64,000 bases of DNA from positions 964,184 through 1,028,183 of the forward strand of contig NW_003314272.1 in NCBI RefSeq assembly GCF_000143415.4. The letters are read 5' to 3'. This stretch comes from Selaginella moellendorffii (taxonomy: Eukaryota > Plantae > Lycopodiophyta). This document shows, piece by piece, positions 1 through 8,540 of the stretch; position 1 is the stretch's first letter, and each line of letters opens with the position of its first letter. The notes beneath the pieces are model-generated. The model was not told where the DNA came from, did not search any database, and saw nothing but the letters and a program-made list of their open reading frames with translations. Made by a program: the position numbers and the translations under genes.

Positions 1-233
1 TGCTAGGTAGCAACTATATTAATGTTCAAACAAACTAAGTGGCAAGTTTAAGTTATTTGTGTTTTAGACAAAATTGTTTAGTAGGGGTTGAGATTTAAGC
101 TTTTCTTTGAAAGGTGATTTAGTCATGGACAATGTTAACTTTACAAGCAGAAGAGTTAGTGATCGATATTAGAATGTTTGAATCCTTATTGAATTTGATT
201 TGGAATATATTAATCATTGATGATTCTTTTTGT

Positions 234-767
234 NNNNNNNNNNNNNNNNNNNNNNNNNNNNNNNNNNNNNNNNNNNNNNNNNNNNNNNNNNNNNNNNNNN
301 NNNNNNNNNNNNNNNNNNNNNNNNNNNNNNNNNNNNNNNNNNNNNNNNNNNNNNNNNNNNNNNNNNNNNNNNNNNNNNNNNNNNNNNNNNNNNNNNNNNN
401 NNNNNNNNNNNNNNNNNNNNNNNNNNNNNNNNNNNNNNNNNNNNNNNNNNNNNNNNNNNNNNNNNNNNNNNNNNNNNNNNNNNNNNNNNNNNNNNNNNNN
501 NNNNNNNNNNNNNNNNNNNNNNNNNNNNNNNNNNNNNNNNNNNNNNNNNNNNNNNNNNNNNNNNNNNNNNNNNNNNNNNNNNNNNNNNNNNNNNNNNNNN
601 NNNNNNNNNNNNNNNNNNNNNNNNNNNNNNNNNNNNNNNNNNNNNNNNNNNNNNNNNNNNNNNNNNNNNNNNNNNNNNNNNNNNNNNNNNNNNNNNNNNN
701 NNNNNNNNNNNNNNNNNNNNNNNNNNNNNNNNNNNNNNNNNNNNNNNNNNNNNNNNNNNNNNNNNNN
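234..767. other. Assembly gap (N run)
   Basis: Continuous run of n characters. Confidence 0.99.
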
Positions 768-3700
768 CATAGCTTTATTATGCTTAATTTTGCATTATAA
801 AGTTTAACTTATAGATGTGTTAAGAAGGATATTATGGGTTATACCTTGATTTTTTCTTGAGCATTGAAATTAGTTCATGCAAGACTTGTGATTATGTTAG
901 ACAAGACTTAACTATAAGCTTCTTCAAACTTTTGGTTCCTTGAGCTTTCATGCTTATGGTCCATTTGTTAGAAATTGTTGAGGAAAGCATTTTGGCTTAT
1001 TAGTTTCAATGTTGAAGTTGGCTTTTGCATCTTGCAATCATTAGTGATGATTGATTATCAACTAGGATAGTTAATTATCCTTGTCAAAAGTTTTGCTTAA
1101 TTATTGTTGATTTAGAATGATTTGTTGTTCTTCGGGATGGTGAATTCTTTCTTCGATAATGATTATGCATCTCTCTATTAATAGGATGATTGATGATCTC
1201 TCATGATAGTTAATTGTCCTCTTTAATAGCTCATGGCTTTTCATAATACCAAATATTCTTTATGGTTTGCTCTAGATTGGTCTTTTGGGTTTGAGATATT
1301 AGTAGGATGTTGTTGACACTCCTTGAGCAACTTTGATTCCTTGGTATTATTGCCCAGGATCTATATAGATTAACTAATGCGATAGTTGGCATGAACAAAT
1401 GTTTGTTGGTCTTGTCATCTGATAAACAAGTATTAGAGTATAGGAACCACCAAGATCAACATAATTGGAAAACATAAGATTCACTATCTAACAAAATTCA
1501 ATAGTAAGTATGTCATCAAGTAAACTCAATGAGAAAATTGAATTACCAAAGATTGCAAATAGAATGCTAAACAATTTACAAAAGATAACTCAAAGAACAC
1601 AAAATATTATTGACTGGCAAACAAAATGTTTGCGAATGTATTGCCCAAATGAAATAACATCAAATTTTATGGAATCTATCACCCAAAGGAAATAACATTC
1701 AATCTATTAGAACCAACTATAGCAACAATCAATAGAATAGAATAAATGTTGTAACTTACTTGAAATACTTTTGTCTTCTAATCTAAGATTTATTCATTGA
1801 TAATTAAGTCTCTAAGATATCATTGTCTTTGATTTTAATATTGCATTTATTGATCTTTGAGTTTGGGCCAGTATAGGTAAACTGCCTTCAGCACTTCGTG
1901 TGTATAGTGAAATCTCTAGTCATGAGGTAGGGGGAGGGGGGGTTATCTAGTGGAGTATCTATATCCTCACATTATGCCACCGGTATGCTAAAATAGCGCT
2001 AGACTCTGTTTGGCTCTGTTTTACGTGCTAATCCTGGCATTGGGATGCTAGATACTCTAAAACTGTTCCAAATTGCTTCATGCTCCTGTCCCTTTGCTCC
2101 TTGGGCTGTATGCTTAGGAATCGCTCCATACTCTAGTTCCTTCGCTCTTTGGCTCCATGTTTGGGAGTTTGGTTCCATTCCTTTGTTCAGTGGCCCAAAG
2201 TCTTGAAACTTGAGTTCCACTCCATTGTCCTTTGGACACGTGGCATGTGACATGTGGCACATAGAGGGTTTAAGTTCTGTTTTGTGGTTATTCTATGGTA
2301 AATTACCATAGGATAAAGAGTAAAAGCCATGTGTGTTACAATTTCTCATAAAGTGTAAACATTATAAATTTTTTTCTTAAGTTGTTTCCTTGGGGGTGGT
2401 CTAAACTAGAGTATGCATCAATGAAGACGTCAATCTTCCCTAAAGGGTGAAGAGTGTCGTAAATGTGAATGTGGGTATTAAAAGTTATATGTTCGAGTCC
2501 TTTCAAATATTCTTTCCTACCTCTTACTATGATGGTAGGAGGTTAATATTGCTAGACCCTTTATCAATCCCTCTTGTGCTAGTGAAGTTAACTGGGCATT
2601 TTGAGTGTAGTTAGACCAAATGAATATAAGGGCGGAATTTCTATGTATTATTAGCTAAGTATACGTAACTTAGTAAAGAGTTTCTGTCTAGTTGTGTTTT
2701 GCACTGGCTAGTGATAAGAACCCCCACTTATTAAGATTAATCCCTCAATATCACCAGATGATAATTTACTATGTTTGCTAAACACACTTGTTATCATGTT
2801 TCATATGTTGGTTTTATTTGGTCTCATTAGCTATTTATAGAAATTGTTTAGATCTACAAGATAGGTATATCTACGGAATATAGAGATCATCACTAGGTAG
2901 CTTCATCATATATCATACATTTTGTGATTTCCTAGTAGAGAAGAGCACCAAGATCAAGCGTAACACTATAGTGATAATAGTAATAATTTTTCCCCTTCAA
3001 TGATTTTCTACTACTAGCCAGCCTATCCTAGCTCAAGTTAGCTTCATGTAGCCCAACTCAGTCCAAACCATGGCTGCCAAGTTATAGCTATGGTCAGCCA
3101 TAAGTAGCACCATGGCTATGGCTGCCTAGCAAATAGCACATTACTGTCGGCACCACCAAATGGCATTGCCATGGCTATGGCCACCCAATGCCACTCCATA
3201 GGAATGGCTACCAATAGCTAGAGCAAGTTTACTTCTTTATGAGTTTTCCTTGTAAATCCTTTTATCTTTAAACCTTTAGAATTTTAAAGAACATATGGGA
3301 GCCACTAGGATACATGAGCATCAATATAGGAGTGGAGTAATAATTATGAAATATAATTCAATGTTTGCTTTATTACATTTTTGGGTAGCAATGATGAAAT
3401 CATTGCTAATGGGATTGCCATACTTAGATAATAGATAGTGGTAGCAATGAAATTCTTAGGTTTTATTATTACAATCATGTAGTGTTTGTAGTTGTAACAC
3501 ACATGGTTTTCACCCTTTATCCTATAGTGATTTACAATATGGAGTAGAACCCAAAACCCTATCTAAGAATAGTGGAGTGAGATTTGAGTTTCAAGGCCTT
3601 AAACCACTAAATGAAGGGATAGAGACAAACTACTAAGCATAGAGCCAAGGAGCAAAAGAAGCGAGGCACAAAAGGATTTTTGAGCATTTAGCCCGAGCAG

Positions 3701-6350
3701 ATGTAAATGATTAATTTTTCCATTCTACTTTAATCATTTAACCATTTGAAAAAGTCTTACATATAACCTTTATAAGTTTTATTTCTGACTTGGGGACTTG
3801 CTAGCCCCGTGAATGACCTCTATACCACTTTACTTTTACACTTAATCCAAGTGCTTCATGTGTCCGATCCCATAACAAACACCTAAAGATACCACTAACA
3901 TATTAGTCTATTACACTAAGGCCATGTCTATTCACCTTTTTTTTATTGGTAGTCCAAAACCACCCATATTACAATCTCATCTTCTAAAGACTAAGCTATC
4001 TATCCATGAGTGGTCATCCTATGACCACACCTTAGCATCCTTAAAATGCTTAAAGACATGAGGAACATCTTTCCCTAATATCTCTTCTTTGGTCCCCACC
4101 AAGTTCCTCTCCATCCACAATTGTGTTCACCAGCACTGTCAATTGGAAAAGGGGCAATTGTGTACTGAGAGAGTGGTCATTGTATCCCTATTTATCCCCT
4201 AAGCTATTAATATCCTCATTGATTATTGACTAACAACCTCTATTAAACTAAGGGGAACTAACATTTTTATTTCTACGTTGAATCTAACAATCCCTCTATT
4301 GTATAGATTAGCTATTCTATATAAGGCAACTAGTCATCCACCTGTACCACAATCCCGTAGTGGATACCTTCATCCATACTCTATAAGAGGAAGGACACAT
4401 ACATGGATGCCCAATATGTACAATTTCAAATTTAGAGGTAGAAATATACCTTACTCAAGGGTATATTATATTTTAAGTAGCCACTAATCAATGAAAATTA
4501 AATTTATGCCATTTGCTCCAATACCACATGTAATGCACTTTATCTCTCTCCCCTTAAACCAATTGAAAAAGGGGCAATTACTTAATGAAAGACCCCTTAA
4601 TGGCTATTTTAACCCCATTTATCCCCTAAAGATCCACAATGATAGTATATCCAAATCTCATCCCATGATTACATGCACTACATGAGGGCCTAACTACTAA
4701 GTCCCATTGACATCTAAGATCTCCTCACCATGTGACCATATCCTTGATCATTACCTAAGAGGACTTCTCCTCCTCTTTTTCACATTCTAGGACTTTGGAA
4801 TAACATTTCAAAACATTATGGCCCTATACAAGCCTTATGGGTACTCCTCTTAGTTTTTGCCTCTGGGTGGCATAGCTATATAACTAGAGCAAAGTTTCGA
4901 TAAGCCACGCTAAGTATCCAAGTAAGTGGTGCCACCTACACTTGGATTGAGAGCATTGACCATCTGATATCCTAGAGGAGCTAGAGTTGGCTCTTGAACA
5001 ATTTACTAAGTTACCTTGCTTGTCCATTCATGTTCATTTTAGTCTTGGACTCCTTAATTGTTATATCATCACCTACCATATAGATATAACCTTCCTAGGT
5101 CACATTAGCTTTTCTTGGCCAAACTGGTTTCACTGAAGTCTAATCCCCACACTCTCCCTAGTATACTTTTGGAACCCCTTGTAGCCCCTCCCCCCTTGAG
5201 GAATGATCACTTTGGGCTTTGACCCTACGACCTGTATTAGTATTTGGACTTGGTCTTGAACTCCATCTCAAACTCCATTTTGGTGGCTTCTCTCTTTATA
5301 AATATAGCATACATGGTTTTCACCTTTTATCCTACATATTTTACCATACGATAACCAAGAAACCTAACCCTCCACATGGCACATGCCACATGTCTAAGGA
5401 CTGCAAAGTGAAACCCAAGTTTCAAGGCCTTAAGCCACTGAACAAAAGAATAGAGTAAAACTCCCAAACATACAACTAAGGAGCAAAGGAACTAGAGCAT
5501 GGGACTCCCGAGTGTACAGCCCAAGGAGCGAAGGGGTAAAAGCACAAAACAATATAGAAATAGTCTTAGAGCATTTAGCATCCCAATGCAAGGATTAGTA
5601 CAGAAAATAAAGCCAAATGGAATTTAGCACTGTTTTAGTATATCAGTGGCATAATGCAAGAATTTGGGTATTCCACCAGCCAATATGTATGGAGATTAGG
5701 CTTAGACCTAAGTCAGACACAGAACAAATACAAACATACAAGCAAGAATTAGATTATACTTCAAATTAGTTAAACATGCTCAACCTACCCACTATCCCTA
5801 CTATACATATGAAACCCCCCATAGCACCCCCCTGAGGAATGTATGCTTTAAGCTTTCACTTTAGTCACATTTGCACTTGAGAACAATGCCATTGTGTTCA
5901 AGATAATCTCTACATTCCATAGATATGCCTAAGACACTTTCTATAAATAGTCATTAGAATTAAATGGGACTAACACATAGGGTATAATAGTGAAAATGTC
6001 TTGGTGAATATGGTAAACTATTATCTAATAAATATTGACAAACCAAGCTCAATATCATAGGGGTTCTCAACACTAACAAGTATAAGTCAATAAATGAGTT
6101 TCTTTAACCAGGTCAAATATATTTGACTAATAACACTTAGGAATTCCCTCCATATGCTCATTTAACTAAATGCACATGTGAAGACTAGTTTCTCAATTAA
6201 CTTGGGTGGAAACTGATAAAAGGGTTCAGCAATACTAACCTCTTCCCATTATGGTAGTAAAGAAAGAATATCTTAAAGGACTTCCCAATAGATAACATTT
6301 GATACCTGTAATCACATTTGCAATAGTAATGTTTGATTGTAACTTCATAA
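768..6350. mobile_element. Degenerate, nested repeat region, probably decayed LTR-retrotransposon fragments
   Basis: AT-rich with no long ORFs. Internal diverged copies: ~1945-2345 inverted at ~5310-5680 and partly at ~3500-3690; ~2440-2900 inverted at ~5870-6320; short direct copy ~4140-4205 vs ~4560-4630. Polypurine-tract-like GAGGTAGGGGGAGGGGGGG at ~1924-1942 and reverse-strand equivalents near 5185 and 5820. Confidence 0.55.
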
Positions 6351-6353
6351 AAT

Positions 6354-6358
<5 letters not shown>

Positions 6359-6416
<58 letters not shown>
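6359..6416. repeat. (TA)n microsatellite
   Basis: Pure TA dinucleotide run. Confidence 0.97.
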
Positions 6417-6420
<4 letters not shown>

Positions 6421-7281
6421 ATGAATTAAATTAGTAATAAATTGTAAAGTAAAACTTTTGTCTAAAATATATATCTTTTATAATAAAAATTTTAATAAAA
6501 CTATAATAAAAGTATAATAGTTACCTTCTAGTGTAGTGCCTATTGTTGCTATGGGATTCTTTCATTAAAGAGCTTGAGCCCTCTATTGTAATATGTGTGG
6601 CATTCATTACTATTTCATGTTCTGGCCAAACTTTATATTGATGCCTAAGTTTATTGTAGTCTCTAAGTGTGTACTTAGCATGTCAAAAGCCTTAATTGAG
6701 CACTCTAGTGCACAATAGCATTGCTGAATTGACAATGGACAATAGCCAATGTGTAGAGAGGCTCATGACTAGCACTCTTTTGGTAGGGAATGTCTACAAT
6801 ACCTAGTTTAGCTACACTTCCAATCTAGTTAAATCTTGCCACACATTTTTGCCATTCTTACCAAACTTAAAAGAAGAAGGTTTTGATATATCAAATAAAC
6901 TGAGAATTCATATATACATTCTAATATATATGCATTTAGAAAAATGGCATCCAAAACATTATTTTGTGAGTCACATATATATGTTTAAACAATTCAAGCA
7001 CACTTCTGTTTTAATTTCATATATTTCACAGTTTAATACACTTTTTTACCAGCCCACCCACCCCAGTACACTTTCCCCAAAACAGTGATCACTAATTGTT
7101 TGCCATAGATATGTTTTAAAAATACCAATTGTTGACATCCTTGAAAAATAACTATTGTTGACATCCTTGTCAGATATTTATTTTGAAAGGATCTTCACAA
7201 AAATATCTAGATATTTTGAAATACTTGTGCAAGATACAAATATACATAAACTCTGAGAGACACGTGGGATGACAACTCGTA

Positions 7282-7289
7282 CTATAAAT
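7282..7289 (+). promoter_or_regulatory. TATA box of the Cys-rich peptide gene
   Basis: CTATAAAT ~70 nt upstream of ATG 7357. AATAAA also present near 7955, downstream of the stop. Confidence 0.6.
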
Positions 7290-7356
7290 TAACCACATCG
7301 GAAGGCCATTTGTATCAAGTTTTGCTTCTGTTGTCTCTGTTTGCTTCAGCATAGTG

Positions 7357-7893
7357 ATGGCATTTGTTCGAGTTTCTTGCATCCTTCTGCTGCCATTGAT
7401 GCTGCTTGCAATTGCCAATGCTGCTGAAGAAGGTAATGCTCAAAAGTTTTGTTTGCTTAAAATTTCAACTAATTCACAAGTTCCACAGCAATGGTGGTTT
7501 CGGAAGGGATGGATGCTATGCATGATCCGCGATATTTGGCTACTATCCTGGAAAAGAAAGGTGCTGCAACTTCCAGGAGTTTTGTTTCATTGTTTTCTGT
7601 TTTTCTTTTGTGCAGGACTAACAAGCGTTGTGGGTGAAACTTACTGTTGCCTCAAGAATGGCTATGGGTGCATGCAAGAGTGTGAAAAAGGCAAAGCGTA
7701 CCAGTGCTGCCTCAAGAATGGCTATGGGTGCATGCAAATGTGTGAGCCATCCAAGAAGTACTCATGCTGCCTCAAGAATGGATATGGCTGCATGTGGATG
7801 TGCGAGAATGGTGTGGAGCACTACTGCTGCGAGAAGAATGGCTATGGCTGCACCAAGATGTGCCCCAAAAAAGTCACTTCTGGCAGCCTCTAG
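7357..7893 (+). CDS. Secreted cysteine-rich tandem-repeat peptide precursor (signal peptide + pro-segment + 4 x 20-aa Cys cores), ~141 aa, 3 exons
   Basis: Exons 7357-7432, 7489-7560, 7616-7893 joined in frame via GT-AG introns of 56 and 55 nt. Product: MAFVRVSCILLLPLMLLAIANAAEE-AMVVSEGMDAMHDPRYLATILEKK-GLTSVVGETYCCLKNGYGCMQECEKGKAYQCCLKNGYGCMQMCEPSKKYSCCLKNGYGCMWMCENGVEHYCCEKNGYGCTKMCPKKVTSGSL. Exact 60-nt periodicity from 7645. Confidence 0.85.
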   Translation: MAFVRVSCILLLPLMLLAIANAAEEGNAQKFCLLKISTNSQVPQQWWFRKGWMLCMIRDIWLLSWKRKVLQLPGVLFHCFLFFFCAGLTSVVGETYCCLKNGYGCMQECEKGKAYQCCLKNGYGCMQMCEPSKKYSCCLKNGYGCMWMCENGVEHYCCEKNGYGCTKMCPKKVTSGSL

Positions 7894-8540
7894 AACGGTT
7901 ATAAATGTGTGGATGGGTATGCATGCCGCTATAGATCTATGGCGGCCAACTTTAAATAAAAACTGAGTGCTTCCTTCTTTGAAGTTCTTGCACATCCTCG
8001 TCCCCCACATTCTTCTACTGTACAATCCTCCACTGATTGCAGACAAACCCATTGTTCCAGATGTGAATTCGAGAGTGATTTCAAGAGTGGTTCTAGAATC
8101 ATGAGTTCCTTCAATGACTTCTAGCGAAAGACGATGATAACAAGCTTGTATAAAGCAAAAAGTCTCTCTCATTTTTTCCATAGCTCCTTTTAGAATCCAG
8201 GAAAAGGACCTGACCCATTGGCGGCAGAAGTAACAGGGACAAGCTCTGGAGCTAACATGCGTCCTAAAAGTCACAATTGTCCCTGCAAGAACGACGCACT
8301 AGACAATCTGATGCTCAAATTTCACGATTCTGCTGTGTCGTCTAGCTCATATCTTGCTAAGGCATATATCGAGTGGCAACATTTGGCGGCAGTCCAAAAA
8401 CACGTGAAAGTATATTGAAAATTTTGTTTGTGGGCCCGATGTCATATTCGAATTAGGTCAAGGTACTTACGGTAGTAAAATCTTAGTTCACGCCTGCCCT
8501 AAAATGCGAAAATTTGGGTTTAGGGTTCTTCGCTCGGGCG

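Follow-up and report, generated by a model that had tools for sequence, protein, structure and literature searches.

A Selaginella-restricted family of secreted cysteine-rich proteins with a predicted β-hairpin-repeat structure

A gene for a small cysteine-rich protein lies at 7357–7893 on the forward strand of a window of 64,000 nucleotides (nt) of Selaginella moellendorffii contig NW_003314272.1; all coordinates given here are positions in this window. The gene is real, spliced and expressed. It is already annotated as encoding a hypothetical protein, and the family to which it belongs is uncharacterised. On balance, we favour the reading that its product is an intact, secreted, disulfide-rich β-hairpin-repeat protein of the apoplast or cell wall, perhaps with a role in binding or defence. 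An earlier interpretation made from the DNA letters only (the sequence-only reading) had seen a multi-core cysteine-rich peptide precursor, to be cut into two-disulfide peptides or into Gly-to-Asn 20-mers that could be cyclised. Such a family would be the first multi-core cysteine-rich polyprotein in a lycophyte, convergent with the precursors of Ib-AMPs or cyclotides and built on a fold without a solved relative. We regard this as a minority possibility.

Gene structure and expression

A word-index search with exon 3 returned a protein of 141 amino acids (aa) with 100% identity, the hypothetical protein SELMODRAFT_440532 of S. moellendorffii (here P0001). Its sequence equals that of the spliced model, and only one two-intron GT..AG solution gives the annotated protein. 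Two scaffolds, corresponding to the two haplotypes of the assembly, code for P0001 identically and have the same neighbouring genes.

Transcript evidence came from contigs of public runs placed on 7150–8100, where runs X1, X5 and X6 belong to three independent studies. Depth was limited to 7314–7430, 7487–7558 and 7614–7983, and was zero in both introns and both flanks. Although 'RNA' is not named in the run records, the origin of the contigs from mRNA follows from coverage of exons only and from a poly(A) tail. Both joints expected by the sequence-only reading, 7432/7489 and 7560/7616, occur in transcript contigs of the three studies, and its three-exon model with two canonical GT..AG introns, of 56 and 55 nt, is borne out. 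The paralogues P0003 and P0004 are expressed as well, their exon 2 being matched by loose ends in these runs. The coding features are as follows.

7357–7432, + strand: coding part of exon 1, with the ATG at 7357, the signal peptide (about residues 1–22/23) and the first spacer residues, from translation
7433–7488, + strand: intron 1, GT..AG, 56 nt; a joint skipping 56 nt in X1, X5 and X6, and zero depth inside
7489–7560, + strand: exon 2, a poorly conserved spacer or pro-region (...HDPRYLATILEKK), from translation; dN/dS of about 0.3–1.6 between paralogues
7561–7615, + strand: intron 2, GT..AG, 55 nt; a joint skipping 55 nt in X1, X5 and X6
7616–7893, + strand: exon 3, with the entire cysteine-rich repeat domain (16 Cys), a short tail and the TAG stop, from translation; 100% identical to P0001
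7645–7704, + strand: repeat unit 1, CCLKNGYGCMQEC followed by EKGKAYQ, from translation and pattern match; a predicted β-hairpin
7705–7764, + strand: repeat unit 2, CCLKNGYGCMQMC followed by EPSKKYS, from translation and pattern match
7765–7824, + strand: repeat unit 3, CCLKNGYGCMWMC followed by ENGVEHY, from translation and pattern match; 60 of 60 nt shared with unit 2 of P0003
7825–7863, + strand: core of repeat unit 4, CCEKNGYGCTKMC, followed by the family-wide P-K, from translation and pattern match

The ATG at 7357 opens a hydrophobic leader of 25 codons. Cleavage of a signal peptide is predicted after ...AIANA and before the next A, on the strength of a hydrophobic core and an A-x-A before the cut, and the signal peptide of the sequence-only reading is borne out to that extent. 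Exon 2 ends in ...ILEKK. Exon 3 encodes, in order, GLTSVVGETY, four units of CC-x6-C-x3-C with 7 linker residues, and PKKVTSGSL; the TAG stop is at 7891–7893. A degenerate back-translated pattern for CC-x-KNGYG-C gave four matches in an exact 60-nt register (7645, 7705, 7765 and 7825), where 0.01 are expected from shuffles, and Tandem Repeats Finder (TRF) reported an array of period 60 at the repeat region. The four 20-aa units on an exact 60-nt period had been described correctly.

Left unspliced, the gene (7354–7893) reads as a continuous open reading frame (ORF) of 179 aa, as the introns total 111 nt and contain no in-frame stop; the frame of exon 2 differs from that of this continuous ORF. 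The open unspliced reading appears coincidental, because the introns sum to 119 and 116 nt in two paralogues as against 111 nt here. It was rejected on the zero transcript depth in the introns and the lack of any intron-retaining contig.

Family members and repeat anatomy

The family was searched for by an exhaustive hidden Markov model (HMM) search of 1.84 billion representatives, together with a profile-seeded word search. These revealed at least 15 annotated related proteins, all from S. moellendorffii, a count that includes haplotype copies and alternative gene models. No member was found in another species among the roughly 15 billion proteins covered, in databases that hold few lycophyte proteomes, and "Selaginella-restricted" is therefore the safe wording for the distribution of the family. 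The ankyrin-repeat protein P0009, retrieved by the exhaustive HMM search with an E of 1.3e-7, was rejected as a compositional or repeat artefact.

The sequence-only reading had not recognised a named family, and this holds. A Pfam-A hmmscan, applied to each of the three exons and to five full-length members, gave nothing relevant at E up to 10, and PDB sequence searches, whether by the single protein or by the family profile, found no relative (ornithine aminotransferase, at an E of 0.2, was dismissed as chance). No published description of the locus tags, the motif or the family was found in the literature searched.

With 3 or 4 units per member, the number of Cys in the mature region is always 12 or 16. 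The cysteine framework of the family is (CC-x6/7-C-x3-C-x7) x 3 or 4, in which loop 1 has 6 or 7 residues and successive CC pairs, separated by two single Cys, stand at a distance of 18–19 residues. Compared with the present gene, the three-unit paralogues lack one unit of the unit 1/unit 2 pair. Motif counts were taken over 58 units and linker counts over 41 linkers. Loop position 3 is taken by Asn (54 of the 58 units), Asp (3) or Thr (1), and the position after it by Gly (39), Lys (6), Ala (5), Pro (3), Phe (3) or Val (2). KNGYG is invariant in this gene and its three-unit relatives, as had been claimed, but only within this closest subfamily (P0001 and P0003–P0005); P0002 already has RNGWG and KNGFG, and the family-wide motif is [KRE..]-N/D-x-x-G(-x).

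The linkers, which had been described as varying, do differ in sequence (EKGKAYQ, EPSKKYS and ENGVEHY in this gene) but not in length. All 41 are exactly 7 residues long and begin with D or E, and 40 of them have Tyr or His at position 6. No dibasic or other common cleavage motif was found among them. In every member C-P-K closes the last unit, and the C-terminal tail has 7–13 residues.

Scaffold GL377567 carries several members, in two clusters related by segmental duplication; P0003 and P0004 represent a single locus, in syntenic copies on the two haplotypes. Of two gene models for one locus, P0013 includes the exon 2 region and P0007 lacks it. Some annotated models depart from the family pattern. 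The 156-aa model of P0002 (scaffold GL377612, L001:6001-6046) starts 14 codons upstream of the family-aligned Met; its extra ATG is flanked by two conserved elements, the TATA-like box and the 5' untranslated region (UTR), and the N-terminal extension MKCHFYQICCFQIV is therefore probably due to a mis-called start. P0008 (SELMODRAFT_438189, 610 aa, L008:14032-16834) opens with a signal peptide and two family units and continues as unrelated sequence, with kinase-like fragments at its end. Probably the model is a fusion or a mis-prediction, or else the gene is a family member that has decayed. P0018 and P0020, both on GL377567, have three full units, preceded by a first unit of which just the fourth Cys and the linker (...STEC-D/E...) are left. 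Their count of 13 Cys reflects either a mis-called exon or a decaying first unit.

Evolution of the repeat region

Ratios of nonsynonymous to synonymous substitution rates (dN/dS) were estimated by the Nei-Gojobori method on the five closest genes. With the identical P0003/P0004 pair excluded, the signal peptide gave 0.36–1.28; the spacer gave 0.29–1.58 and the repeat region 0.04–0.36. Within the latter, the cores gave 0.08–0.35 and the linkers 0–0.92, the linker values coming from very few sites. Cores and linkers alike are under purifying selection, whereas the signal peptide and the spacer evolve near neutrality. The diversifying evolution that the sequence-only reading had supposed for the repeats is contradicted by these values.

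Units at the same position in different paralogues are 80–100% identical in DNA, whereas units within this gene share only 53–77%. As identity between genes at the same position exceeds identity within the gene, the array is old and its units are orthologous by position, each with a character of its own, in a region that is conserved. The half-units at the two ends (TYCCLKN and ...GCTKMCPK) are among the best conserved segments. Unit 3 (7765–7824) matches unit 2 of the unlinked P0003 over 60 of 60 nt while the neighbouring units are 75–87% identical, and this stretch may be a gene-conversion tract.

Predicted structure

AlphaFold2 with nine family sequences gave a model with a mean predicted local distance difference test (pLDDT) of 81.7 and a predicted template-modelling score (pTM) of 0.64. 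The model consists of eight strands arranged as four hairpins, one per unit, on which four of the five AlphaFold2 models agree. In each unit strand A, (T)Y-C-C-L-K-N, is followed by a turn on the G-Y pair and by strand B, G-C-x3-C-E. The conserved Tyr ahead of the CC pair and the acidic residue that follows the fourth Cys, nominally parts of the 'linker', are placed within the predicted β-strands. Going by its pTM score, the model indicates a defined packing between units.

A Foldseek search of the PDB with the nine-sequence model found no relative (best E 2.0), and VIA-align found no match among 48,161 chains (best Z 3.5) nor among Foldseek's top matches. A fold search of the ESM Atlas reached a TM score of at most 0.34, and a feature search of the same resource gave no usable match. 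Rows for TMEM55B, TNFR and GyrA-CTD in the fold searches were dismissed as weak (E at least 2, Z at most 3.5, TM at most 0.34). The predicted β-hairpin-repeat structure is thus without counterpart among the solved structures searched (best Z 3.5).

A proposed intact hairpin-repeat protein

We propose that the signal peptide would be removed, perhaps together with the loosely conserved N-terminal spacer, and that the functional part would be one compact disulfide-rich domain of four contiguous 20-residue units. Each unit would fold as a β-hairpin made up of strand Y-C-C-x-K-N, a turn at the G-aromatic pair and strand G-C-x3-C-E. The 7-residue 'linkers' would then be structural parts of the repeat, and the hairpins would be braced by 16 cysteines (12 in the three-unit paralogues). 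The protein would act uncut in the apoplast or cell wall, and the aromatic-bearing hairpin tips would be its likely contact surface, for example towards a polysaccharide or a microbial target, because a conserved aromatic residue sits on these tips, which vary more across the family than any other part.

An intact domain is favoured on several grounds. The linkers are conserved, of fixed length and without a cleavage motif; the conservation of units is position-specific, with the end half-units and C-P-K strongly conserved; and there are no spacer propeptides, the charge is near neutral (pI about 8) and the multi-unit model is confident. Several observations weigh on the other side. The layout of 20-aa units with CC and CxxxC, in many copies per transcript, resembles that of Ib-AMP, a true polyprotein, and a unit number of 3 or 4 speaks of modularity. 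The AlphaFold2 alignment was shallow, with 9 sequences of one species, and an alignment of five sequences gave a pLDDT of 41 and a model that was discarded. The proposed function is purely something that we infer. Weighed together and in rough terms, we hold the intact protein to be somewhat probable, processing of a polyprotein to be possible though doubtful, and processing by an asparaginyl endopeptidase (AEP) into cyclic peptides to be very improbable, and leave the remainder to other roles.

Comparison with precursors of linear and cyclic peptides

The Ib-AMPs are four 20-aa peptides released from one transcript, with CC and CxxxC and with CysI-III and CysII-IV bonds (PMC4695807). An Ib-AMP-like polyprotein in Selaginella would be cut in the 7-residue linkers into three or four two-disulfide defence peptides of about 13–20 residues, an outcome to which we give a modest chance. 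The likeness is evident in the 20-residue units with four Cys as CC...C-x3-C, several per transcript behind a signal peptide and a spacer, and the multi-core layout seen by the sequence-only reading is to that extent present. Each unit is predicted to form a self-contained β-hairpin, and unit number differs between paralogues. Apparent expression was very high in one run, which is often so for defence peptides, although contig depth is a rough guide.

The case for processing is weakened by the linkers, which are of one length, conserved, under purifying selection and without a shared cleavage motif, and by the conserved identity of each unit position. The units are near neutral (pI about 7.9) and not strongly basic as in Ib-AMPs, and the pTM argues for a fixed packing between them. 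Ib-AMP1-4 of Impatiens balsamina were, reportedly by Tailor et al. in 1997, found to derive from precursors with longer acidic spacer propeptides, whereas the present gene has no spacer propeptides but fixed, conserved 7-residue linkers. The loop has 6–7 residues here as against 8 in Ib-AMP1, and the host is a lycophyte whereas that of the Ib-AMPs is a eudicot. No sequence similarity to known peptide families was detected with Pfam or a PDB profile. The exhaustive HMM and word searches retrieved no Impatiens protein at E up to 0.001, no direct comparison with an Ib-AMP sequence being part of them.

The second form of processing that had been suggested is a cut by AEP after the Asn of K-N-G-Y-G, with ligation into three head-to-tail cyclic 20-mers (Gly...Asn) carrying C-x3-C-x7-CC. 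Known AEP ligation sites consist of Asn or Asp followed by a small and then a hydrophobic residue. The present gene has G-Y after the Asn four times, and the near-constant Asn of the 58 units, with Asp in three more, would suit such an enzyme. In the predicted structure, the two ends could be brought close by a hairpin between strand B of a unit and strand A of the following unit. However, one unit has Thr for Asn, and Pro, Lys, Phe, Ala or Val may follow in place of Gly. Asn-Gly is a classic tight-turn pair, so its conservation is explicable structurally. The cuts would land within a disulfide-braced hairpin and would discard both end half-units, which are among the most conserved segments.

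The gene shares a signal peptide, a pro-region, repeated cysteine-rich cores and Asn-Gly with Oak1-type cyclotide and other AEP-processed precursors such as those of the PawS type. Cyclotide precursors differ from it in having six Cys per unit, as against four here, in the spacing of a cystine knot and in N-terminal repeat spacers; unlike in AEP-processed precursors, the Asn and the residue after it vary across this Selaginella family. We know of no cyclic-peptide family with this layout. Release of cyclic 20-mers thus seems most improbable.

Comparison with granulins, thionins and hevein

In UniRef, P0001, P0003–P0005 and P0007 bear the name 'Granulins domain-containing protein'. We consider it very improbable that the repeat region is, as this implies, a diverged granulin domain (PF00396, IPR000118) with homology to the modules found in animal progranulin and plant RD21-type proteases. 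The resemblance is that of small, secreted proteins with at least 12 Cys (12 in the three-unit members), in which CC pairs recur and β-hairpins are predicted to follow one another, as in granulin. The granulin 12-Cys pattern is C-x5-6-C-x5-CC-x8-CC-x6-CC-x5-CC-x4-C-x5-6-C. Its CC pairs stand 5–8 residues apart, and the CC-x6/7-C-x3-C-x7-CC spacing of the Selaginella family, repeated 3 or 4 times, does not fit it.

Pfam Granulin (PF00396) gave no match at E up to 10 with exon 3 or with five full-length members, and the family profile retrieved no granulin chain in the PDB. Neither Foldseek on the PDB (best E 2.0) nor VIA-align (best Z 3.5) paired the model with a granulin, though small disulfide-rich folds are easily missed by such searches. 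Several close paralogues do not carry the name, suggesting a borderline automatic match. The name is thus unsupported by Pfam or structure searches; a distant analogy, as a stack of hairpins with CC pairs, is possible.

Thionins are likewise secreted cysteine-rich plant proteins, and units with a 7-residue loop share with them the local framework CC-x7-C-x3-C. They are, however, single domains of 45–47 aa with 6–8 Cys, a C-terminal acidic prodomain and the CxxxC in a helix, whereas the present family has repeated units, a predicted all-β structure, a tail of 7–13 residues and no match to Pfam Thionin (PF00321). The 'Selaginella thionins' of PMC8279376 are unrelated sequences.

Tandem lectins of the hevein/CBM18 type, such as wheat germ agglutinin (WGA), also consist of small disulfide-rich modules in tandem, with CC followed by a Gly-/aromatic-rich turn, and carbohydrate binding as in hevein and WGA is possible by analogy. 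Hevein modules differ in having about 43 residues and 8 Cys in another spacing. The Pfam scan gave no match to Chitin_bind_1 (PF00187), and the family profile found no WGA or hevein chain in the PDB.

Promoter, transcript ends and genomic setting

The TATA box and the AATAAA signal are both intact, as noted from the sequence earlier. The non-coding features of the gene are as follows.

7261–7266, + strand: CACGTG, a G-box-like element read in the sequence just 5' of the TATA box
7283–7289, + strand: TATA box, TATAAAT, read in the sequence and conserved in paralogue promoters
7314–7356, + strand: 5' UTR, minimum extent; the longest contig (run X1) begins at 7314, with no depth upstream
7894–7977, + strand: 3' UTR, with AATAAA at 7955–7960 and the poly(A) site after 7977

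CT(A/T)TAAATT is kept in the promoters of all five closest paralogues, and the first transcribed base seen, 7314, is 31 nt downstream of the TATA box. The block around CACGTG, GAGAGACA(C/T)GTGGGATGACAACT, is shared with the promoter of the paralogue P0005. In X5, 23 A's form a loose end behind 7977, placing the poly(A) site 17 nt after AATAAA. About 115–165 nt upstream of the TATA box, at 7118–7169, there is a 26-nt direct repeat in two copies with a 92% match. Each copy contains TTGACA, which is like a W-box core. The repeat is not conserved in the aligned paralogue promoters. An antisense ORF at 7762–8274 (170 aa) was rejected on the lack of transcript depth past 7983.

Upstream of the gene, positions 1–7300 are AT-rich, with a GC content of 0.23–0.39 as against about 0.5 downstream of the gene. 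The public annotation has no called genes in this part, which contains a (TA)29 microsatellite at 6359–6416. Downstream, between 8541 and 17700, the public annotation places an RRM/zf-CCHC protein (+), a double-AAA ATPase (-), a RING protein (+), a diaminopimelate (DAP) epimerase (-) and ribosomal protein S28e (-), with an unannotated gene of 425 aa (-) between the first two. These neighbours are ordinary housekeeping genes and have no functional link to the cysteine-rich gene.

Significance

Secreted cysteine-rich peptides and proteins are major components of plant defence and of cell-to-cell signalling, and the characterised families come almost all from seed plants. The present family adds a new cysteine framework, found in one spikemoss. 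If its members are processed, multi-core peptide precursors would be moved back to the early vascular plants. If they act intact, as we favour, they would offer a small scaffold of a new, disulfide-rich kind and a means to probe apoplast biology specific to lycophytes.

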